DNA of 64,000 nucleotides from Guillardia theta CCMP2712. Taxonomy: Eukaryota; Protista; Cryptophyta. The stretch spans positions 1 to 64,000 of the forward strand of contig NW_005434663.1 in the NCBI RefSeq assembly GCF_000315625.1. Direction: 5' to 3'. Positions 1-19,105 of the stretch are shown one piece after another (position 1 is the stretch's first letter; every line of letters begins with the position of its first letter). The position numbers and the translations under genes are program-made. Below the pieces are notes generated by a model. That model did not search any database and had not been told where the DNA came from. It worked only from the letters and a program-made list of their open reading frames with translations.

Positions 1-955
1 TTTGTGGACTTGCTGGCCTGGCGCCCCAGCGACCAGCATGCGCTGCGCAGCGGCGTGGAGTTGGACCGCTGCAAGGGACTGGCGCAGCAGCTGATAGCGA
101 TAGACGGCAGCTATCTCAGCCGTTGTCATGCCGCCCAAGGTTAGCAGGGGAGTCAGCTCTGCCAAGCTGCCCCCTTTGCCCCAGGGTCCTCTCTTGGCTC
201 GAATCTTGAAAGATCGATCGTGCACGATGCTCACATGTACAGCTGTGAACTTGCGACCATCGATCGCGAAGTCCTCTCTTCCCTGCCAGAGCTTCTCCGC
301 TTGTGCATTGCGGAGGAAGGAAACAGTCACCGGGATCTCTCCAGCACTCGCTATCTCGGGTCTATACGGAGCCTTCCACATGATTGCTTTACTCTCTTGC
401 ACTGAGTCTACGATCAGTCCAATCTCTTCGAATTTCTTCTTCAACTTTTCTTCATGGTTGACATACACCGAGGAGATGCCCAGGAGAGTCATGGAGATGA
501 AGGAAGTTACCTCGTTGCCTGCTGAGGCGGTGTATGTCTCGACCTTCTCCTTCTTGGCTTCCTCAATCTGCTGCATAAACCACTCTCTGGATGCGTCACT
601 CCATCCAGTCATCGCTTCTTGCAGAAGCTCACGTCGTGCCTGCTGACATGTCGAGCGGATGGCTTCTGCGATAGCGTCGGGGGTGCATCCCTCCACAGCC
701 TTGCAAGCCTGGGCTGTCCTGCTGTTCGGATAACGCTTCGCGAAGCTCTTCACCCTCTCGACGAGATCAGCTTCGAGGACAGAGGCATCCACAAGTCCGC
801 TCTGCGTGTATTGGCATGATCTCCGATACAGCAGGTTGCGAACATTTTCATCATACTGAAGAACCATACTTAGAAAGCTATTTGAAGTATACAAACCTCT
901 CGCTTGCAGCTTCCTTGGCGCCCTGGCGGCTTCCCCTACACCTGGCAGGGAGCCA
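1..955 (-). mobile_element. Second-family (B-type) ORF1-like sequence, open off the left edge
   Basis: Shares long nucleotide identities with 12330-13080 (e.g. cgaggagatgcccaggagagtcatggagatgaagga, ctgcgtgtattggcatgatctccgatacagcaggttgcgaac). Protein is homologous to the N-half of element A ORF1. Confidence 0.85.
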
Positions 956-3081
956 TGCACCTCCAGCAGTTGCTTGATTGCTGCTGTCTTGATGCTTTCC
1001 CATTCCGTGTCTTCCACCCTTAGTACCCTGAAATTCTCATGCCATTCCCTTTCCATGATCGATCCTTTCACTCCTGCTATGAATGTTGCTTGTTCAACTT
1101 CATGGTCAGGGAGCAGAGCTGTGATTTCTGCTCTTAGAGCGGCATATTTCTCTTCTTTTTCCTGAAATTTCTTCTTCAGGCATTCCAGGCTTGTTTGTTC
1201 GACTCCGTCATATTCCGATGTCCTTGCGAATTCAATGATGACGATGCGTTTGATGTTTGTAAAGTAGCAGCAACCGTCTGGTATCCATTGTCCTTCTTGG
1301 TGCATGGAAGTCCCCATCGCTTCCATCACGATGCGCATTGGAGTTTCCCACCATGTAGTGACCTGTAGCCTTTGTTTCCTCCAACTCTGCTGCAGTCTTA
1401 CCTTGATCTTCTTCATGACTTGATTGTGTGCTTGTTGGATCATTGCTTGAAACTGCCGACATGCCAGCTGAATATGCCCCCAGGTTTCTTCTCGGTCTGG
1501 ACAGTGGGGGCAGCATGATGAGTTAGTCTTCCCCCATTGAAAGAGCTTCTTCCTCGTCGGTGCTGAGAAGGTTATCGCTTGGATAGCTGTTCGCGTAACT
1601 GAACCCAGGCTTTGTCTTAGCGCTTTGCCTAAGAGATTTCTTCCCACATGCATTTCGAGCATGAACTTCTCTGTCAAGGTGAGGTCTCCCGCTCGAATCC
1701 TTGCCACCATTGTCTGTTGTCTGATAATGTAGTCCCATTTCTTCAAGCGATCGAATCCTGATGTAGGATTTTCTTCTCCTGCAATGATGAATTCCATTGG
1801 GCTATCGTAGATTGCTTTCTCCCATCCCGAGGCAACTGTTTGTTTCCCTTGCTTGGCCAATTCTTTGGCCTCTTGAATGTGTCTCTGAGATTCTTTTGCT
1901 AGTTGGAGTCGGATCCTGATTCCCCTTCCTTCGAGTTTCTTCATGCAAGTGAGTAACCGATCATGTAAGTCCTCCAGCAGTTCGTCTTCGTATCGCATGG
2001 TATCCATTCGCAACGTATTTGTCATAAAGCGGTGGAAACGTGTGGACTGGTACATTATAGTGACTTGATTTCCCCTTTTGATTTGTATTCCTTCCTCAAG
2101 GACATGTTGCAGAAGTAAGCCAATTGCGATTGTGTTCGCTCGGATGATGCTGCACTTCCCATTGATTTTCATCCCTCCTCCTGACGTCATCTCTTTTTGT
2201 TGGAGAACATATCCTATTCGCATGGATCTGTTTTTTCTGCCCTGTGTGATGTCTCCTTCAATAGCTGCTGGGAAATGCCTTCCGCCTTGATGATTGCTGC
2301 GCGGCTGGATCTGATCCCTTCGTCTGTTACACAGCTCCTCATACGTTGGGAGGATGTTGTCCTGAAGCTGGACTCGTAAGTATGTTGGGAGTGTGTGCCT
2401 AACTAGTATCCATAACTCCTCTGCAGTCTTCATCAAACACCTATTCCCTGTTTGCCAGAAGTTTGCTGCATAAGCTATTTGAGCGCCTTTCGGGACCCGG
2501 CTGATAATTTCAAAACCTTCTGGTATCTCATCAATGTAATTCTTCCATCCTATCAGAATGACATGTATTGTATCCAGGATTTGTTCACGAAATCTCTTTT
2601 GTTTGTCCATCCAAACCACCACTCTGTGCAGTTCCCTTGCTCTCTTCTTGTCCAGAGCCTGGGGATGTGTGTGTAGGGTAGGCCAGTTACGAAATGTACT
2701 GATGTCGCATGCTGTAATCTCTGCTAGATGTTGTAAAAACTCGTATGCCAATGGTTGTGTTGTTTCTTGGCGAACCTCTGATACTACCTCCTCGAGTTGT
2801 TGCCACCATGTTGTAGCTTCTGTTTCGCCGTCGTCCAATGCATTAACTATTTCCAGCAGCAGATGTATGCTTTGATTGCAGTCTCTTCGGTTATTACCGT
2901 CCTCTTCCCTTGTTGCAGATGCGAAGGGAGCCGAGTCCAGTGACGCTTCCAACCATTCTATTGGTGGATCCACGGTCTTGCTTTCTTCAATTTGAGATCG
3001 CTCAAAGATGGCTATGTTCCCTTGAACTTTGAAAGGTAATTGCTTGTAGTGTAACAGAATCTTTCTTGCTGATTCCCTCCT
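1..3081 (-). CDS. Element A ORF2 C-terminal fragment (open off the left edge): degenerate RNase H, CCHC knuckle, restriction-like endonuclease, continuing in frame into an ORF1-like sequence
   Basis: Manual translation gives 1027 codons with no stop. It contains CPHCPDREETWGHIQLAC (1459-1512), AHNQV, WIPDGCCYF..RIVIIEFART..EKEEKY..FIAGVKGSI. It is missing from the ORF track because it has no stop in the window. Confidence 0.9.
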
Positions 3082-5630
3082 TCATCATAACAGGTGGGGT
3101 CATGTTGGAGCCACCGCCTCAAAATTACCCGGGTACAAGCCTTCGTATTCGTTTCCTCTCTCCCTTGGTCCGGTCTGGCTAGTTTCTTGTGTGGCTGAAG
3201 TTCATGTGGGCTAGCCTCCCTTTTTCCTTTCCTTCTCTTGTTTAGAGGCTTCCCCTCCTCCCTGGCTGGCCTTCTTCTCTTCCCTGTTCCTGCCTGCTCA
3301 AGTCCGAGTTTTGCCCAGATGACATTCGCTTGCAGATATTGTGCAAGGATTTCTTCTGCTTGTTCCCTTTGCTTTGGGAATGGCCAGAGTCGGATGGGCA
3401 GGTGCAGGGAGATGCCCTCGGTATCTGGGACGGGTAAGACACTTGTCATGGAGTGGAAGCCTACTTGGGGCAGTAGTCTCCATGCCTTTGCAAAACTCTC
3501 CCAGCCTTGCCGAGCAGGAGATGTAGGTAGGGAGTTTTCTCCGGACAGCAGGGAGTTTTCTTCTGAGAGCATCTTGTCCTCCAGGTCATGTAAGATGGCT
3601 ATTGTCCCCGGTTTCATCTTGCTTTCAATCATTTCCCAACTGATGGTGGTCTGCATTTTTTCCGCTATCCAGATTGCGAGTCTCTCCGGTCCTCTTATCT
3701 CTTCGTTCTCTTTGAGTCTGCCCGATCTGATTTCTCGTTGTAGCTGGTTTATTGTTTGACACCCCCATTGGTTGCACCATGATGTTAGTTTGTGGATCAG
3801 ACTGCTTTTGATATCATCATCCACCCTGCATTTCTTATTCGTTTCTTTCTCTAGATACCGAATCGCCGCCCTTCCCAAGATGGGTGCTGGATGGGGGAGT
3901 TGGAGGCCTCCTTTGTCCCAAGGTAGGTGAAAGATAGCGTTGCTTGTACTCTTGCTCAATCCCATAGCTCTTTTGAATGCTCTGGTCCAGAGGGTATCTA
4001 AGGTTTGTAAGTCTGACCAAGACCAGCTCACCAGTACCGCCGAGTATCTAAAGATATTGACGATGCCTACCTTCACCAGGTAATATTTTTGGGCTGCCGA
4101 GTAAGCAGATGATTCAATCAGCTTTGTCAGTTCTTTTGTCTTCTCCAAGATGTGTTCTTTCTCTCCCCACGTGAAGGGGCAGGTGTGCGCCTTGTTGCCT
4201 CTTCCTCCTGGTCTCCACAAGCTGATCCGGATCCCTAGATATTTGAACCATTTTGTCGGTGGTAGGTTCACAAACTCCTTGTCGAAGAACTTGATGGTCT
4301 GTGTTCCTGGGATCTCCCTTCTTAGCCGATAATCAAAGCTGGTGATTTCAGATTTCTTCGTGTTCAGTTCTAATCCACTCCATCGACAGAATCGCTCTAC
4401 CACTTGGACAAGCGTTTTCATCTCTCTCACTGAATGTGCTATCAGGACAAGGTCGTCTGCAAATGACAGATTATTAGGGTGTTGAGTTGCAATCTCGTCT
4501 TGTTGTTGATCAAGTTGTTTGGACAAGATGCTGAGCAGAAGATTTGTTTTTGGCGGACTTGCGGGGCTGCCTTGGGGTAATCCTCTGAGAAGTGGGATGG
4601 CTGCTGTTTCGAACCTCTCTGTCTGAATTTGCAGCGCTATCCCTTGGCTACAACTGATTGCGACGTCTACATCACACTGGTGAAAGCCATATACTTCCAT
4701 GATTTTTGCAATGGATTCGACTGCCACATTGTTAAAGAAGTTTGCAAAGTCGAGGTACAGCAGGATGAGGTCGTGTTGATTACTCTGAGCCTCCTCGATG
4801 ATGTTGAGTAGACGATGACCCTGCCTGATCGTTCCTCCCTCTGGTCTGAAACCTTCCTGGTTGTTAGTGAGTAGCTTATGTTTTTCAGCAGCTTTTGCCA
4901 GTCTGTGCGCTATGACTGCCTGGAAGATCCTCGTTATCGAGGAGAGGACGCATATAGGTCTTTGATTCTCCAAGATGTGACATATCTCATTTTTTGGGAG
5001 GAGCCTAACTCTCGCGAGCATCTTTAGTGTTTGCTTGTCTCCGATCAAGGCTCGGCTGATTGTCTTGCCTATTTCCTCCTTTGCACTGTCAGGCAGAGCT
5101 TTCAGAATCTCGTTTGAAATCAAATCCATGCCTGCTGCTTTCCGGTTGGCCAGTTTTTGAATCCATACTTGGATCTCGCCTGGCTCCAGCGGGTAAGCTA
5201 TCTCTACATCCCTGGTCGGGTGTTGATTGATTTGCTCTGGGGGTTCGAAGTCCGGTGGTTTGACGGAAGTCAGTGATTGACAGCTTTTGCAGAAGAAGAG
5301 GATTGATGCTTCTTCGTTTTTCTGGCTTTTGTCATATAACGGAATCAGTCGTCCTTTTGTTTGACATTCAGCTCTTGCACAGGTTCCGTTCATGGTACAT
5401 CCGTTGACTGCAAAGAAGGTTGCCGTGTGGGTTTCATCTTCTAGATCTCTTGCCAATCTCATGGGGAGGAATTGCTCGATGTTTTTGTATCCTTCCAGGC
5501 GCCACCCTCCTGGCTGTGTGATCAGTCCTCGGATGATGGGTACGATTGCGTGTGCAGGCGCCAGAGTTATGAACAGCTTTTGTGTCAGTGTTGCCTGGTT
5601 CCTCGCCCCGAGAACCTCGACGTGCAGCAT
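3012..5630 (-). CDS. Element A ORF2 fragment: non-LTR reverse transcriptase
   Basis: Motifs KAAGMDLI, RPICVLS, NQEGFRP, LDFANFFNNV, GLPQGSPASP, FADD, GLELNTKKS, FKYLGI, LPWDKGGL. Confidence 0.96.
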   Translation of the reverse strand: MLHVEVLGARNQATLTQKLFITLAPAHAIVPIIRGLITQPGGWRLEGYKNIEQFLPMRLARDLEDETHTATFFAVNGCTMNGTCARAECQTKGRLIPLYDKSQKNEEASILFFCKSCQSLTSVKPPDFEPPEQINQHPTRDVEIAYPLEPGEIQVWIQKLANRKAAGMDLISNEILKALPDSAKEEIGKTISRALIGDKQTLKMLARVRLLPKNEICHILENQRPICVLSSITRIFQAVIAHRLAKAAEKHKLLTNNQEGFRPEGGTIRQGHRLLNIIEEAQSNQHDLILLYLDFANFFNNVAVESIAKIMEVYGFHQCDVDVAISCSQGIALQIQTERFETAAIPLLRGLPQGSPASPPKTNLLLSILSKQLDQQQDEIATQHPNNLSFADDLVLIAHSVREMKTLVQVVERFCRWSGLELNTKKSEITSFDYRLRREIPGTQTIKFFDKEFVNLPPTKWFKYLGIRISLWRPGGRGNKAHTCPFTWGEKEHILEKTKELTKLIESSAYSAAQKYYLVKVGIVNIFRYSAVLVSWSWSDLQTLDTLWTRAFKRAMGLSKSTSNAIFHLPWDKGGLQLPHPAPILGRAAIRYLEKETNKKCRVDDDIKSSLIHKLTSWCNQWGCQTINQLQREIRSGRLKENEEIRGPERLAIWIAEKMQTTISWEMIESKMKPGTIAILHDLEDKMLSEENSLLSGENSLPTSPARQGWESFAKAWRLLPQVGFHSMTSVLPVPDTEGISLHLPIRLWPFPKQREQAEEILAQYLQANVIWAKLGLEQAGTGKRRRPAREEGKPLNKRRKGKREASPHELQPHKKLARPDQGREETNTKACTRVILRRWLQHDPTCYDEGGNQQERFCYTTSNYLSKFKGT

Positions 5631-7728
5631 GGTTTGATGTCTTGCACTCCAAAAGGTTTTGCTTGATTCTTTGGAGTTGTTCTGGAGGAATGTCTCGATT
5701 AACGGGTTCAGTTCTTGAAGATATGCTGTCTCCGGCTGTTGCAGCGCTGGCTGGAGATCTCTCCATGACGTTGTTTGGGTGGCACTTCTCTGGCAGTTGA
5801 CTCAGCATTGGGGCTTTGGGCTTAAAGTCTGACTTCTTGCCCATTGCATTTTGAGACTCTTTACTCCCTATCGTGCCCAAGCGTCTTCTTCGTTCTTCGC
5901 ATGTTTTCAGGAATATCTCTTGGTCTTGTGCTGCGCAGATCTCCTTGAATTTGGTCATATTCTCTCTTATTTCTGCATGTAAGCTCGACTCCTTGTGTGC
6001 GCGATCAATAAAGTCTGGAATTTCTGAAGCGTTTCTTAAGTCCTTGTGAAGTTGCTTGATTTTGCGCTTCAGATCCATCTGAATTTTGGATGCATGTCTT
6101 TTCCCGCTGGAGCCTCGTAGCGGAATTTCCTTGATGGGGAGGGCTGTTGTTATCAATTCGAGAATGTCGCAATCTTGATGTAGAGCTTGTGCCGCTTTTA
6201 TCTTCTCATCAAGTGCTATTGCCCATTCCACGCCTAGTCTTCCCGATAGCTTGTCCATCTCGACCACCCTTTTCTTTCGTCGAGGGGTTGCTTCTCGATC
6301 CCTCCTTTGCGGGAGGATTTCAATCTTTGGGATGGCTTGCTTACCCTCAGCATCGAGAGAGCTCACATTCACTACAAGTGCTCTGTGGTCGACTGCGGCT
6401 CCTATGATGCAATCCTCTGCGGTCTGCGATATTAAGCTTACTGTGCGAGATGGATGGTGTAATGCAAAGACATGATCCAGTTTTGCTTGGTGATGACCCT
6501 GCTTGTACCATGTGGAGAAGGTGAAGTGCGTGCTGCTTCTGCTCATCTTCTCGCAAGTGACCATCTGGGATCGTCCAAGTTCGTTTAAGCCTTGTTCCAT
6601 TCTCTCATCTGCACGGTGCATACTCGATTTGCTCCCGTATCCGACTCTCATGGGGATCTCTGGATGTTGTCGAGATGCATTGAAGTCGCCTCCTATGATG
6701 GTGAGCTTGACACTTGGCTCCGTCTTGAGCATCTGGCTCAGCGTTGCCCACATCTCGTCTTGATCCTCCCCTTGCGCTGCAGTAGGAAAGTGGGTGTTAC
6801 AGATCCCTATCGGTTCTTTTTTTCCGATCTGTAAAAGTTGTATTCTTTTTTGGAGATTCTGCTCTTCCAACATGTCAGCGCGGCGGCAGAGCAGGGGGGA
6901 GGGACGAGGGAGAAGGTCCGCATGTACTAGCGTCACAAGGCGAAGATCACTCTTACCCTTTCTCCCCTCCCCTGCACCTTTCGTCATGAACACTCGGTAG
7001 CATCCCCATTCTTTCTTGATCATCATTCGGAGATCTGCCTCCTTTCGTTTTCCCCCGACCAAAACTTCTTGAAGTAGCACGACTGTTGGTTGATATGTTT
7101 CAATCAGGTATCCTAGGATGTGTTTCAGCACAAATTGACTGCATCCATTGACATTGTGAGAAATGATGTTGCCAGGGGCGTTGTCCTTCCTGTGCGTTTC
7201 CACCCATGCTGATTGCACTGACCTGTCGGTGGTAGTCGTGGGTGGTTTGCTGCCTGCTGGTAGGATTTGCTCCTCCGCCCCCGTTGCCCATTGAAGGTGA
7301 GACGAGTTCCCATCTTGCATCTTTGTTGGGCCTGGTAGCTCCTCCTCTCCCCTTGTCTCCTTGTCGTTCTTCGAGATTGGCGCTGTGTGCATTGCTTGTG
7401 GCGGAGGAGGTGGCTGGAGTGGAGAGACGGGGCATGAAGCAGGAGGTGGGGGAGGGGAGGACGTCAGGATGTCTACCTGTGCTGACCTGTCTTGTAGTTG
7501 CAGGACCGTCGCGGCTATGAGCTTCGTTGATCCTTGTCCTCCTTGCTCCTGCTCGTCTTCCAATCTCTCCTGTAGCCGTGCATCTTCAGATGCCTGGGTC
7601 GCCTGTAGATCGCCTGCGCGTTCTTGGCCGTCTTCTCGCCTTTCCATCCGGTTAGGTATACGTTCCATGGTGAGCTCTGCAGCTTGCCATTCCTTGTAAC
7701 CTGTATCTTGCGCGTGCTGTAGAGCCAT
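5434..7728 (-). CDS. Element A ORF2 fragment: apurinic/apyrimidinic-like endonuclease (APE)
   Basis: Motifs SHNVNG, VLLQEV, ICNTHFP, IGGDFNA, KLDHVF, VDHRAL in canonical order. Confidence 0.92.
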   Translation of the reverse strand: MALQHAQDTGYKEWQAAELTMERIPNRMERREDGQERAGDLQATQASEDARLQERLEDEQEQGGQGSTKLIAATVLQLQDRSAQVDILTSSPPPPPASCPVSPLQPPPPPQAMHTAPISKNDKETRGEEELPGPTKMQDGNSSHLQWATGAEEQILPAGSKPPTTTTDRSVQSAWVETHRKDNAPGNIISHNVNGCSQFVLKHILGYLIETYQPTVVLLQEVLVGGKRKEADLRMMIKKEWGCYRVFMTKGAGEGRKGKSDLRLVTLVHADLLPRPSPLLCRRADMLEEQNLQKRIQLLQIGKKEPIGICNTHFPTAAQGEDQDEMWATLSQMLKTEPSVKLTIIGGDFNASRQHPEIPMRVGYGSKSSMHRADERMEQGLNELGRSQMVTCEKMSRSSTHFTFSTWYKQGHHQAKLDHVFALHHPSRTVSLISQTAEDCIIGAAVDHRALVVNVSSLDAEGKQAIPKIEILPQRRDREATPRRKKRVVEMDKLSGRLGVEWAIALDEKIKAAQALHQDCDILELITTALPIKEIPLRGSSGKRHASKIQMDLKRKIKQLHKDLRNASEIPDFIDRAHKESSLHAEIRENMTKFKEICAAQDQEIFLKTCEERRRRLGTIGSKESQNAMGKKSDFKPKAPMLSQLPEKCHPNNVMERSPASAATAGDSISSRTEPVNRDIPPEQLQRIKQNLLECKTSNHAARRGSRGEEPGNTDTKAVHNSGACTRNRTHHPRTDHTARRVAPGRIQKHRAIPPHEIGKRSRR

Positions 7729-7785
7729 GGTGAGCTCTGCAGCTTGCCATTCCTTGTAACCTGTATCTTGCGCGTGCTGTAGAGC
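7665..7785. repeat. Exact 60-bp tandem duplication in ORF2
   Basis: ccatggtgagctctgcagcttgcc...gctgtagag x2. Confidence 0.95.
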
Positions 7786-7808: not shown

Positions 7809-8681
7809 TCATGCGTGTTTTCCTTCGGGGGGGACGCCTTGTTGCCTCCCTGTGTTGAAGATATCTTGTTGTTGTGTTTTCCTTCGTGTCTGCAGCCCAG
7901 TTGACACACATGCCCTCCATGCCGTGTCGTCACAGTGTTCTTGTTGATCGCTAAGCCCAGTTGACACACATGCCCTCCATGCCGTGTCGTCACAGTGTTC
8001 TTGTTGATCGCTAATTGCCTCGGTGATAATCGTCGCCATGAGTATTCGCTGTGCGCCCCCCAATTGAAACTGTGCCTCCCTTTGGCTTCTGACTGTCCCC
8101 AGGTCTCTCTCAAGGGCCGTGCTAAGCGAGTCGACGATGTGTATTCTTTTTGTGTTAACATCTGCCACGATTAGGATCCAATGATTGCCGTTCTCTACGC
8201 AAGGGAATAAGAATGGTTGAGCTGCCCCGGCTAGCAGTCGTTTTGCTCTCCGTGCCCTTCCCTCCTGATCTCTCAAACCCGCTACTATTCTCGGGAGAAC
8301 AATGGTCCCTCTCTGCAGCCCAAATTGGTTTCTAGTTTGCTCGCTGGCATACCTCGTGCCTTGGAGCCATGCTATTTGAAATCTGTCTTCCGCTGGTTCT
8401 AAATTTCGGTTTACCTCAACGATTAATGCCTCCATAACGTCCTCAGAGAGAAATCCATCTTCTCCTGAGTTGAGCAGCGCCGCTGCTCCGTACTCTCTAT
8501 TGTTTTCCCGTAGACTCCAGGGGATCTCCCCTATCAAGTCGAATGTTTGTATTTTTCTGTTTTTTGGATTCTTTTTGTCATTCTTTTTCTCACCTTCTTG
8601 TCTCTTTCTGCTTGATTCCACCACGCCCTGGTGCCCACTGTCCCACCTGCCCTCAACTCCTCCTCCTCCTCCTGCTTCCAT
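7809..8681 (-). CDS. Element A ORF2 N-terminus: Ulp1/SENP (peptidase C48)-like domain
   Basis: FLSEDVME...FLFPCVENGNHWILIVADVNTKRIHIVDSL matches the C48 H-W-x-L-x-V-x-D...(Y/V)DSL signature. The QQ-x-x-x-x-D segment is duplicated. Confidence 0.7.
   Translation of the reverse strand: MEAGGGGGVEGRWDSGHQGVVESSRKRQEGEKKNDKKNPKNRKIQTFDLIGEIPWSLRENNREYGAAALLNSGEDGFLSEDVMEALIVEVNRNLEPAEDRFQIAWLQGTRYASEQTRNQFGLQRGTIVLPRIVAGLRDQEGRARRAKRLLAGAAQPFLFPCVENGNHWILIVADVNTKRIHIVDSLSTALERDLGTVRSQREAQFQLGGAQRILMATIITEAISDQQEHCDDTAWRACVSTGLSDQQEHCDDTAWRACVSTGLQTRRKTQQQDIFNTGRQQGVPPEGKHA
7894..8014. repeat. Exact 60-bp tandem duplication in the protease domain
   Basis: agcccagttgacacacatgccc...gatcgcta x2 (SDQQEHCDDTAWRACVSTGL x2). 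Confidence 0.95.
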
Positions 8682-10828
8682 TAGGCTTGCGCTGCTGGGA
8701 AGGAGTCAAGCGACATCTCTTCCGATTCTGCCGCCATGCTCCCAGCCTCGGGTACATCTTCCATTCGAGCGTCTTTCATCTGTAGCTCACTGCTCAAAAC
8801 AAATTTCAATTCGTTTCTATCTCCCAGCATTCCTACGAGGGAGAGCGCCGTTGCCTCCAGGAATTTATTCAAAGCAATGAAGAGGAGATCAGTTTTCAAT
8901 GGCTTCTCTTCATTTGGTGCGAAAGCGCTGTTCTTGCGTTTCGCTACCTTCCACGTATGTTTGCCTGCAATCACCCTGACTCGTTCACGCAGTCGCTTGC
9001 TCACGGCATTCTCTGCCGCGTTGGCACCCTTATCAGCCCACTCTTGTAGCGTGGGGAAGGATGCATTTCCTGGGCTCTCCGGAGCCATCTCTTGCACCGC
9101 GTCATCAAGATGGAGTTGAAGCTGCCCTTGCTGTTGCAGCTCGCTCCTAGTTACGTCAGCAATTGCTTCCTTAAGTTCTACGACGACCACGTCCGTTCCC
9201 GCATCTGGGAGGTTTATTTCATTGATAATGGAACTGAGCTCGATCTCTTTCCACACAGTTCCTTCTGCTCTGGTCCCCGTCGTTTGTGACCTGGCCTCAG
9301 GGTTAGACTGATCGCGAGTTGCCTGAGGCGACACTTGGAGGTTCAGACTGCTCGCTGTCGTTTGGATTTCAACTGTGCCTTGCCAGCAGAGGAGCTGTGT
9401 GGGGAATTCAGCCATCATCTTTCTTGCACTACTTTCACTGCGTAGCCGGAGAATGATACCAGACCCATCCCAGATCCCTGTTTCTGGATCGCATTGGAGG
9501 TGGATCCGTTGGAGATCTTTTTCCACCTGTGGATCAAAGCAAGCGACAGCCCTCCGAATGTTTCGGATGACTTTTGCTCTGCCCGTTTCATCACTTGCGC
9601 AGATTTTTTCAATCTCATTTCGGGAGAACTTCCCTGACGGCACAGGAGAGGAGATTTGTACCGAGTACAGCATCTCTGCTCCCGTTGCCATTGCCGTGCC
9701 CTCTTGTCGCACCGCATTCTTCATATTCTTGTGCAGCGCCGTTGCTTCCATCTGCACTGAGAACCATTTCAGTATTTTGTCATTCTCTGAGACCAGTCCC
9801 AAAGTGACTCCTGCACGATCCTTTCCATGTCGATCGAATGCTTGAAGAACGATGTCCGCTGCTTCAAGGCTCGAGCACGTTGCGATCCAGTCGACCTCTC
9901 TGTTCTGGTTGACTGTTTCTATTCCTACCGCAGCGAACACCTTCTTTGGCGGTAGGTTCCTCTTGGGGGGGAGGTTCACTGTCATTCCCGCGTTTGGGAT
10001 CAGATCAATGATCGCTAATCCCTGCTTCAGGCATAGCTGCCTGTAGATCTCACATATGTCACCTGTGCTCGAATCGTTGAGCATCAGGAGTTGGGCCACC
10101 TCAGCTAGGATTCCAACTCTGCCCATGTTCTCCTTCTTTGGCCGCATCTTGAACGAGATCGGTGGGTTGGCTGCTGGGTTCACTGCTAGAATCCTCCTGC
10201 CTGCCACCTTGAAGGTACCTTCTCCTTTCCAGAGTTTCTCAGCCGCCTCATTGCGGACAAATGTGATCACTGCTGGGATCTCCGCTGCCTGCACAAGGTC
10301 AGGCTTCAAGGGAGCCTTGAAGATCAGGCTCCTGCTGTCTTGCGTCTGATCGACGATCAAGCCTTGCTCTTCAAGCTTGAGGCATAAGTTTTCCACCTGT
10401 CTGGAAAAGTATGCAGGGATCCCAAGTACCTTCATGGTAATCGTCTGCACACTTGTGCCCTGGTCATCATATGATCTGGCCTCCATCTGCCTTTGTCTGT
10501 CAGCTTGGAACTCTGACAGGTACCACTGCCTGACATCGTCACCCCACTGCCTGAGCCCTTTCGGATTCTCCAGTGACGAGGGTTCAGCAAAGCTGCATGT
10601 CTGACTGATGGCTTCGGCTAAGGCTTCCAAGGATATTTCTTTGGCTTTCAGAGCTTTGCTCGTCCTGCTTTTGGGGTTCTGCCTTGCGAATTCATCCAGT
10701 CTCCGCATCAGTTCGGCTGATGACGGCATCGTGGCAGCTTCCGTCTGCCTCTTGAGGTAGCTGGAGGTACGGTACTGCACGATCTCGTCAGGGTTCACAA
10801 TAGATATTGGCCACATGTTTCGAAGCAT
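8681..10828 (-). CDS. Element A ORF1 (715 aa, putative gag-like/RNA-binding protein, no recognised family)
   Basis: Intact long ORF upstream of ORF2. Homologous to ORF1-like sequences at 1-955 and 11506-13080 (shared GLIVD, KAP..P, FxRN..AEKLWxG, GxFSRxE, LFIALxKF). Confidence 0.85.
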   Translation of the reverse strand: MLRNMWPISIVNPDEIVQYRTSSYLKRQTEAATMPSSAELMRRLDEFARQNPKSRTSKALKAKEISLEALAEAISQTCSFAEPSSLENPKGLRQWGDDVRQWYLSEFQADRQRQMEARSYDDQGTSVQTITMKVLGIPAYFSRQVENLCLKLEEQGLIVDQTQDSRSLIFKAPLKPDLVQAAEIPAVITFVRNEAAEKLWKGEGTFKVAGRRILAVNPAANPPISFKMRPKKENMGRVGILAEVAQLLMLNDSSTGDICEIYRQLCLKQGLAIIDLIPNAGMTVNLPPKRNLPPKKVFAAVGIETVNQNREVDWIATCSSLEAADIVLQAFDRHGKDRAGVTLGLVSENDKILKWFSVQMEATALHKNMKNAVRQEGTAMATGAEMLYSVQISSPVPSGKFSRNEIEKICASDETGRAKVIRNIRRAVACFDPQVEKDLQRIHLQCDPETGIWDGSGIILRLRSESSARKMMAEFPTQLLCWQGTVEIQTTASSLNLQVSPQATRDQSNPEARSQTTGTRAEGTVWKEIELSSIINEINLPDAGTDVVVVELKEAIADVTRSELQQQGQLQLHLDDAVQEMAPESPGNASFPTLQEWADKGANAAENAVSKRLRERVRVIAGKHTWKVAKRKNSAFAPNEEKPLKTDLLFIALNKFLEATALSLVGMLGDRNELKFVLSSELQMKDARMEDVPEAGSMAAESEEMSLDSFPAAQA

Positions 10829-10903
10829 TCTCGATGGTTTCCCGAGCTTCCTGCGTTCCTGGCGACTCTTGCTCTACCACGCAGGGACCCCGCTGATCTG
10901 CAT

Positions 10904-11120
10904 GCCTCAGATAAAGGGATCCTGCATGCCTCAGATAAAGGGATCAGATAAAGGGATCCTGCCTCAGATAAAGGGATCCTGCCTCAGATAAAGGGATCCT
11001 GCCTCAGATAAAGGGATCCTGCCTCAGATAAAGGGATCCTGCCTCAGATAAAGGGATCCTGCCTCAGATAAAGGGATCCTGCCTCAGATAAAGGGATCCT
11101 GCCTCAGATAAAGGGATCCT
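10904..11120. repeat. 20-bp tandem repeat (GCCTCAGATAAAGGGATCCT) x~11 at the 5' end of element A
   Basis: Eight perfect units at 10961-11120 plus about 3 full or partial units. Confidence 0.97.
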
Positions 11121-11165
11121 CTAAACCCTAAACCCTAAACCCTAAACCCTAAACCCTAAACCCTA
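11121..11165. repeat. Telomeric repeat tract (CCCTAAA) x~6
   Basis: Direct reading; plant-type TTTAGGG on the minus strand. Confidence 0.97.
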
Positions 11166-13153: not shown

Positions 13154-13229
13154 GACAAGGCCCGGCCTGCCTCTGACAAGGCCCGGCTGCCTCTGACAAG
13201 GCCCGGCCTGCCTCTGACAAGGCCCGGCC
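13153..13229. repeat. ~21-bp tandem repeat (GCCTCTGACAAGGCCCGGCCT) x~4
   Basis: Direct reading; resembles the element B 5' terminus gcctctgtcaacgggcccgg. Confidence 0.9.
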
Positions 13230-13261
13230 CTTAACCCTAAACCCTAAACCCTAAACCCTAA
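13228..13261. repeat. Telomeric repeat tract (CCCTAAA) x~5
   Basis: Direct reading. Confidence 0.95.
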
Positions 13262-18809: not shown

Positions 18810-19105
18810 TCCTTGTCGCCTTCCTTCCTCCCTTCTCCCCTTCCTTGTCGCCTTCCCTTCCTCCCTTCTCCCCTTCCTTGTCGCCTTCCCTTCCTCCCCT
18901 CTCCCCTTCCTTGTCGCCTTCCCTTTCTCCCCTCTCCCCTTCCTTGTCGCCTTCCCTTCCTCCCCTTTCCCCTTCCTCGTCGCCTTCCCTTCCTCCCCTC
19001 TCCCCTTCCTTGTCGCCTTCCCTTCCTCCCCTCTCCCCTTCCTCGTCGCCTTCCCTTCCTCCCCTCTCCCCTTCCTTGTCGCCTTCCCTTCCTCCCTCTC
19101 CCCTT
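18810..19105. repeat. 33-bp pyrimidine-rich minisatellite (TTCCTCCCCTCTCCCCTTCCTTGTCGCCTTCCC) x~9
   Basis: Direct reading. Confidence 0.92.

Follow-up and report, generated by a model that had tools for sequence, protein, structure and literature searches.

A telomere-repeat-inserted Dualen-type retrotransposon of Guillardia theta with a predicted R2-type second endonuclease

Organization of the locus

The window analysed here is the whole stretch formed by the first 64 kb (64,000 nucleotides) of contig NW_005434663.1 (C11) of Guillardia theta CCMP2712, taken from an assembly of 87 Mb in 669 contigs (GCF_000315625.1). Close to its left border the minus strand holds a reading frame without any stop codon, which starts at position 3081 and which an earlier note, made from the letters alone, had reported as missed by the track of open reading frames (ORFs) and as encoding a second endonuclease of a long interspersed nuclear element (LINE), i.e., a restriction-like endonuclease (RLE) of the R2 type in addition to an apurinic/apyrimidinic endonuclease-type domain (APE). 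This frame is present as described: it extends over 1027 codons down to base 1, a stop-free run with a chance of ~4e-22 under uniform codons ((61/64)^1027), and it is missing from the ORF list because the listing program omits ORFs extending beyond the end of the source sequence. Positions 956-3081 are, with high confidence, the C-terminal third of ORF2 of a ~11-kb retrotransposon without long terminal repeats (non-LTR retrotransposon) of the Dualen/RandI type, in a decayed and 3'-truncated copy that is joined to a partner element bearing ORF1 only. The features of this copy, all on the minus strand, are the following in the direction of its sense strand (RT, reverse transcriptase; HMM, hidden Markov model; dN/dS, ratio of non-synonymous to synonymous substitution rates):

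11121..11165, minus strand: telomere tract (TTTAGGG)6.4 separating the element from the (TAA)n tail of the one upstream (TRF and sequence reading)
10898..11120, minus strand: 5' tandem repeats of the element with a 20-bp unit (TRF and sequence reading)
8684..10828, minus strand: ORF1, 715 aa, without a Pfam family (intact relative with the same arrangement)
7812..8705, minus strand: start of ORF2 with an Ulp1/C48-like protease region (Pfam Peptidase_C48, 19.4 bits)
5437-7785, minus strand: frame with a near-threshold APE match (Pfam Exo_endo_phos)
6463..7161, minus strand: APE-type endonuclease domain (Exo_endo_phos, 22.7 bits; matches of the profile A2; motifs NVNG, LQE, GDFNAS, LD and DH)
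3015..5801, minus strand: RT-bearing frame (Pfam RVT_1, E 1.5e-28, match at ~4224-4997)
5770..5774 (~5772), minus strand: 11-bp deletion breaking the APE frame against the RT frame (comparison with the intact siblings L027 and L034)
3038..3040 (~3039), minus strand: 1-bp deletion breaking the RT frame against the RLE frame (extra base in 11 of 13 aligned copies, absent only in the window and the C35 copy; pairwise comparison agrees)
955..3081, minus strand: C-terminal part of ORF2 after the 1-bp break, with the post-RT region, RNase H-like region, linker, CCHC knuckle and predicted RLE (stop-free; continuous with the RT in intact siblings)
1789..2316, minus strand: RNase H-like region with replaced DEDD residues (iterated family HMM; alignment A3; dN/dS ~0.10)
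956..1749, minus strand: linker, zinc knuckle and predicted RLE module (homologous to R2Bm ~848-1107 and R2Tg ~915-1165)
1..955, minus strand: 5' part of an ORF1-only partner element, outside the Dualen element (97.9% identity to partner copies whose starts directly follow telomere repeats and a 20-bp 5' repeat of their own)

The sense strand is A-rich from ~1000 to ~13000 and the G+C content climbs below 1000. An A-rich sense strand is typical of LINEs.

A predicted R2-type endonuclease module at the C-terminus of ORF2

Database searches and fold modelling were carried out with natural intact copies of the element. An exhaustive phmmer search against 1.8 billion representatives, started from the C-terminal 270 aa of an intact sibling, yielded 132 relatives, and relatives with a length of 1100-3900 aa bear the RLE domain at their C-terminus. 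With the single 270-aa sequence no match was obtained by phmmer among the PDB sequences, R2 being reached solely by the family profile; moreover, no Pfam model reported the RLE in the module, in which the knuckle alone was marked by a sub-threshold zf-RVT match, and a look-up in the ESM Atlas returned unnamed or zf-RVT clusters only. An alignment of 44 relatives of the module (A1) revealed that the four knuckle ligands, the histidine of AHN, the proline and aspartate of PD, the arginine following the acidic residue and the lysine and tyrosine of K-x3-Y are invariant or at least 90% conserved. All of the motifs that the earlier note had named are present where it had placed them:

1512-1459, minus strand: CCHC zinc knuckle CPHC-x8-H-x4-C (C-x2-C-x8-H-x4-C), with C, C, H and C at least 90% conserved in the 44 relatives and a sub-threshold Pfam zf-RVT match
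1431-1417, minus strand: AHNQV, counterpart of the R2 RHN motif, H at least 90% conserved in A1, pairs with 'rHN' of R2Tg
1284-1273, minus strand: IPDG, PD of the predicted PD-(D/E)xK site, P invariant and D at least 90% conserved in A1, pairs with kPDlI of R2, identical in 16 copies
1239-1219, minus strand: IIEFART, acidic (D/E) residue followed by an R invariant in A1, pairs with vvDvTvR of R2, identical in 16 copies
1161-1144, minus strand: EKEEKY, catalytic-type K and KY motif, K and Y invariant in A1, pairs with aeKvrKY of R2
1083-1057, minus strand: FIAGVKGSI, G-x-(R/K)-G strand after the predicted active site, pairs with GaRG of R2, identical in 16 copies

Used as a profile against the PDB, the A1 alignment matched the R2 structures 9nl3 (E 6.5e-26), 9dou (R2Tg, E 9e-26) and 8gh6 (R2Bm, E 2.2e-6), and the resulting alignment pairs PD with kPD, the glutamate of (L/I)EF with the aspartate of vvDvT, K..KY with K..KY and G.(R/K)G with G.RG. 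The AlphaFold2 model computed on A1 has a mean predicted local distance difference test score (pLDDT) of 95.1 and a predicted template modelling score (pTM) of 0.90. In the Foldseek comparison of this model with the PDB the best seven matches are all R2 structures, with template modelling scores (TMq) of 0.60-0.68. By VIA-align the model superimposes on R2Tg 915-1165 with Z 22.2 and a root mean square deviation of 3.2 Å over 242 of 270 residues and on R2Bm 848-1107 with Z 19.4, and the next fold class, the PD-(D/E)xK cap-snatching endonucleases, follows at Z ~10.

The assignment of the segment to the R2-type RLE, as put forward in the earlier note, is borne out by the match of the R2 profile, the R2 fold matches, the conserved catalytic-type residues and the purifying selection described below. 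The note had likewise judged the catalytic-type PD, E and K residues to be intact; the CCHC, PD, E and KxxKY residues do not vary among 16 genomic copies, and the catalytic-type ones align with the active site of R2. It had also proposed the comparison with the R2 RLE fold and had named the lack of a PD-(D/E)xK fold as an outcome that would speak against it; such a fold is predicted, with R2 as its best match. As judged from homology and from the structural model, positions 956-1749 are a genuine, predicted R2-type module consisting of a CCHC knuckle and a PD-(D/E)xK RLE.

Purifying selection on both predicted nucleases

In all 16 copies of equal length the 265 codons of the RLE module are free of stops and the hallmark motifs are identical, though 13-29 other residues differ. 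Pairwise dN/dS values of the RLE segment are 0.13-0.24 at dS 0.2-0.4. Between intact copies dN/dS amounts to 0.26-0.34 for the APE, 0.06-0.07 for the RT, 0.10-0.11 for the RNase H-like region and 0.16-0.24 for the part comprising linker, CCHC knuckle and RLE. These values indicate that selection has maintained both predicted nucleases in the lineages ancestral to the compared copies.

Sibling copies, decay of the window copy and the junction at 956

At least 45 matches to positions 955-3081 were found in the same genome, with 82-100% identity and many of them at contig ends, and in all 18 sibling copies that were compared the similarity to the window ends exactly at 956. Beyond this point the siblings continue with 17 more codons, a TAG stop, a 3' untranslated region of ~430 nt, the (TAA)n tail, TTTAGGG repeats and then the 5' tandem repeats of the next element. 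The window copy thus reads as cut off at 956, 17 codons short of the TAG stop of the family, and the truncated element is fused in frame to the near-5' end of the partner via a 3-nt microhomology, GCA. The absence of a stop has its sole cause in this junction, which happens to keep the frame open. Regarding the earlier note, which had treated the frame as part of the same element as the RT, this view stands for 956-3081, a segment collinear with the RT in every sibling; positions 1-955 belong to another element.

The comparison of siblings that the note had suggested revealed that the RT and the RLE frame normally form one ORF. The copy on contig C90 carries APE, RT and RLE in a single stop-free frame of 2261 aa, the copy on C2 has a stop-free frame of 1991 aa, and an intact metagenome relative (P0150, 85% identical) encodes an ORF1 of 712 aa followed by a complete ORF2 of 2573 aa in the layout seen in the window. 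Since intact siblings contain one continuous ORF, the RLE frame, the APE and the RT are parts of one element. Of the idea of a hidden frame the genuine RLE remains, but instead of a separate ORF it constitutes the C-terminus of ORF2, detached by the 1-bp deletion at ~3039 and deprived of its stop by truncation and fusion at 956. As the two deletions of 11 and 1 bases total 12 bases, the APE and the RLE share one frame while the RT lies in another. With its two frame breaks and its missing end, the window copy appears to be dead. Contigs of four sequencing runs, guessed to be RNA, were compared with the window; the one contig of run X13 that spans ~3038 carries the base deleted in the window copy.

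The copy on contig C35 (G000:C35:3000-12999; L021, L002) shares the 1-bp deletion with the window and keeps the normal stop codon. Its RT frame of 929 aa equals that of the window, implying that it also has the 11-bp deletion. Rather than by two independent retrotranspositions, the window and C35 copies probably arose when a copy that was dead already underwent segmental duplication, or else from a single defective source. In the window copy the 5' part of ORF2, as assembled, contains two perfect 60-bp tandem duplications at 7665-7785 and 7894-8014 (2.0 copies each, 100% identity), the lengths of which are in frame.

In all four runs the partner (1-955; 700-960) reaches a summed contig word depth of 10-100x the value for the Dualen part. 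Judged by this contig depth, the partner exceeds the autonomous element by far, either in abundance or in expression.

Domain composition and assignment to the Dualen clade

Dualen/RandI elements are defined by the joint presence of an APE and an RLE (PMC4640811; PMC9977147). They are listed as LINE/Dualen for cryptophyte genomes generally (PMC12747079), and for the cryptophyte element Dualen-1_GCr a single ORF with the order C48 protease, APE, RT, RNase H, CCHC knuckle and C-terminal RLE was described (PMC5029228). The family studied here has a C48-like protease region, a LINE-type RT (RVT_1, E 1.5e-28), an APE N-terminal to it and a CCHC knuckle and predicted RLE C-terminal to it, all within the same ORF in intact copies. 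A profile of the APE region built from 11 family members (A2) matched ExoIII (3g91, E 2.9e-8) and the human L1 endonuclease (1vyb, E 4e-6) over the full length, and the APE motifs NVNG, LQ(E/D), GD(F/W)NAS, LD and DH are present. Every long RLE relative that was examined also has an APE region and an RNase H, and several have a C48 protease. When the complete 2261-aa ORF of a sibling was used in a word-indexed search for homologues, no more than five proteins were obtained. Among the relatives with an organism name, the nearest are those of the cryptophytes Hanusia phi (50% identity) and Rhodomonas salina (44%); the others are metagenome proteins. The element lies outside the R2 clade, given its APE, its N-terminal C48 protease and its target of TTTAGGG repeats.

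The RNase H-like region at 1789-2316 is equivalent in position to the RNase H of the relatives, a correspondence for which an iterated family HMM was needed; no alignment resulted when the post-RT region was compared by BLASTP with the RNase H of the relative P0086. In the alignment A3 the motifs DGS, AE, TDS and AD of the relatives correspond to EGD, AN, YQS and AK in the window, and they are likewise replaced in the Hanusia phi relative. More distant relatives carry a clear RNase H.

Domain content and order identify the element as a LINE/Dualen, i.e., as a known type that is neither an ordinary APE LINE nor a new class. The novelty implied by the earlier note was in this respect overstated, as LINEs with both APE and RLE form the known clade Dualen/RandI and were already described from cryptophytes with the same domain order (PMC5029228). 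In comparison to the cryptophyte Dualen, the family at hand differs in several points: no SET domain was found in the element, the DEDD residues are lost, ORF1 is a separate frame of 715 aa, insertion is confined to TTTAGGG and ORF1-only partners exist. Dualen-4b of Chlamydomonas inserts elsewhere, with long duplications (PMC9977147).

Insertion into telomere repeats

In the genome 75 exact (TAA)n-TAGGGTTTAGGG junctions were counted, compared to none for the reversed control pattern. Junctions on the minus strand are located near contig starts, whereas those on the plus strand are found mostly at high coordinates, by the contig end where this end is known (C2, C72, C149, C174, C183); therefore, the sense strand of the element and the G-rich strand of the telomere both point to the chromosome end. 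In nine of the 11 5' junctions that were read, the telomere tract ahead of the element ends in TTTAG, and the 3' junctions lead into differing downstream elements. An intact element on an independent metagenome contig is flanked by telomere repeats in the same manner. TTTAGGG repeats are the only target of the family, the phases of its junctions are fixed, and it forms arrays together with ORF1-only partners.

The telomere tracts between successive elements are short and near-constant in length, usually 6-8 repeats, despite differing downstream elements (11121-11165 and 13228-13261 in the window; L004, L007, L008, L009, L012, L035). The length of the tract may thus be determined by the mechanism of insertion or be carried in the RNA.

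Alternative readings of the module

Three other explanations of the RLE frame have to be weighed against its reading as the nuclease-bearing C-terminus of ORF2. An overlap of 66 nt between the RT frame and the differently phased RLE frame exists in both the window and the C35 copy, as would be expected for a separate downstream ORF ('ORF3') expressed by programmed frameshifting or reinitiation. However, 11 of the 13 aligned copies contain one more base and are read straight through, a single ORF of 2261, 1991 or 2573 aa is found in three intact copies or relatives, and the 929-aa RT frame shared by the window and C35 implies a common decayed ancestor. This reading is contradicted by the read-through in intact copies and was rejected as very improbable. 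That the segment is an unrelated neighbouring insertion, or a chance frame antisense to a spliced plus-strand gene, draws some support from positions 1-955, which do belong to another element, and from the contigs of the four runs, which have many GT..AG joints on the plus strand between 1277 and 3092. Yet in every sibling 956-3081 and the RT are collinear, the minus frame is under purifying selection at the codon level and has strong protein homology, and the region holds no plus-strand ORF above 105 aa. For 956-3081 both versions were rejected on the grounds of collinearity, selection and homology, and hardly any credence is left to them.

Somewhat more weight, though still little, falls to the possibility that the RLE-like module is a non-cutting structural relic, comparable to the RLE-like domain of Prp8, which would be retained for folding, DNA/RNA binding or positioning while the APE does all cleavage. 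The adjacent RNase H-like domain illustrates that this lineage keeps a constrained domain (dN/dS ~0.10) after the loss of its catalytic residues, and in SART1/TRAS1 and L1 an APE alone suffices. However, the RLE, unlike the RNase H-like part, keeps all catalytic-type residues: among 44 distant relatives P, K and Y never change and D reaches at least 90% conservation, and these residues are identical in 16 copies and align with the active site of R2. A relic is for these reasons considered unlikely, and the preferred reading remains that of a predicted nuclease within ORF2 of a Dualen-type element.

Several observations nevertheless weigh against this preferred reading or parts of it. The nuclease function of the RLE is predicted from residue conservation, and the assignment to Dualen was made by domain content and order in comparison to published descriptions. 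The APE, at 22.7 bits for Exo_endo_phos in the window, stays just below the curated cut-off in single sequences, and the Peptidase_C48 match stays under its cut-off of 20.7, which the intact relative P0150 exceeds with 26.5 bits. No Pfam RNase_H match was obtained in the window element, although published Dualens carry an RNase H. Finally, the contigs of the four runs present at 956-959 the normal 3' end of the family and the normal 5' end of the partner and not the junction of the window, so that this junction could be unique to the locus or could be an assembly join at a contig end.

The joints on the plus strand, antisense to the element, include 1676>1901, 1964>2335, 2048>2334, 2521>2577 and 3033>3092, and most of them occur in all four runs. 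In these runs, guessed to be RNA, they may represent antisense transcripts of the family that have been spliced.

Proposed integration mechanism

Tentatively, the family might represent the first target-specific Dualen, i.e., a telomere-repeat two-endonuclease LINE that lies with its ORF1-only partners in head-to-tail arrays at most chromosome ends and whose APE and RLE might each cut one strand of TTTAGGG in fixed phase, the C-strand after CCCTA and the G-strand after TTTAG. As a whole this remains a possible rather than a probable scenario. Given the observed orientation, the cDNA would lie on the C-rich strand. This strand has no natural 3' end facing in the right direction, and therefore an endonucleolytic nick in duplex telomere DNA would be needed, whereas priming from the G-overhang would give the opposite orientation and cannot explain the observed one. 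Target-primed reverse transcription would follow the nick in the C-strand, as for SART1, and the (UAA)n end of the RNA would pair with the nicked ...CCCTA-3' primer, the TA common to tail and repeat permitting such pairing. The two fixed junction phases would point to two sequence-specific cuts. In the simplest assignment the APE would nick the bottom (C) strand first, as in SART1/TRAS1, and the RLE would then cut the top (G) strand at TTTAG^G; the reverse assignment of APE and RLE to the strands is an alternative.

Comparison with other site-specific elements and implications

SART1 and TRAS1 of Bombyx mori are telomeric-repeat-specific APE LINEs of the R1 clade. Their 3' tail is joined directly to the telomere repeats in a fixed phase and they form head-to-tail arrays, like the family described here; moreover, SART1 has the same orientation, with the tail followed by the G-strand repeat. 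In contrast, SART1/TRAS1 possess only the APE nuclease and end in a poly(A) tail, whereas the G. theta family has an additional predicted RLE and a (TAA)n tail and is found at most chromosome ends of a protist. With R2 (R2Bm, 8GH6; R2Tg, 9DOU/9NL3) the family shares the homology of linker, CCHC knuckle and RLE (E 6.5e-26), the predicted fold (Z 19-22 over ~240 residues), and the PD, D/E, K..KY and G.RG motifs, and both are site-specific for a tandem repeat target. Unlike this family, R2 is devoid of APE, C48 protease and RNase H, carries an N-terminal zinc finger and Myb domain and targets the 28S rDNA. MoTeR of Magnaporthe oryzae (cited in PMC3636483) is similarly an RLE-bearing non-LTR element residing in telomere repeats, but it lacks an APE, belongs to the CRE clade and has another proposed priming model.

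Dualen elements are thought to preserve a transitional stage of non-LTR retrotransposons, after the acquisition of the APE and before the loss of the older RLE (PMC4640811). No target-specific Dualen was found in the searchable literature, and the specificity of this family for telomere repeats may be new. The family is a well-defined case for studying the role of the two Dualen nucleases, since it has many young copies in which both predicted nucleases are under purifying selection. Its target is short, known and repetitive and both junction phases can be read, so that a division of labour between APE and RLE would be testable on simple oligonucleotide substrates. If it indeed is a target-specific Dualen, it would offer a natural system for the roles of the two nucleases and for the way in which RLE-type LINEs gave way to APE-type ones. 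For annotation, the case teaches that the three-frame appearance and the missing stop of the window copy are artefacts of decay.

Beyond the element array, the window contains at 18810-19105 a 33-bp tandem repeat in nine copies with 95% identity, which is C/T-rich on the plus strand.

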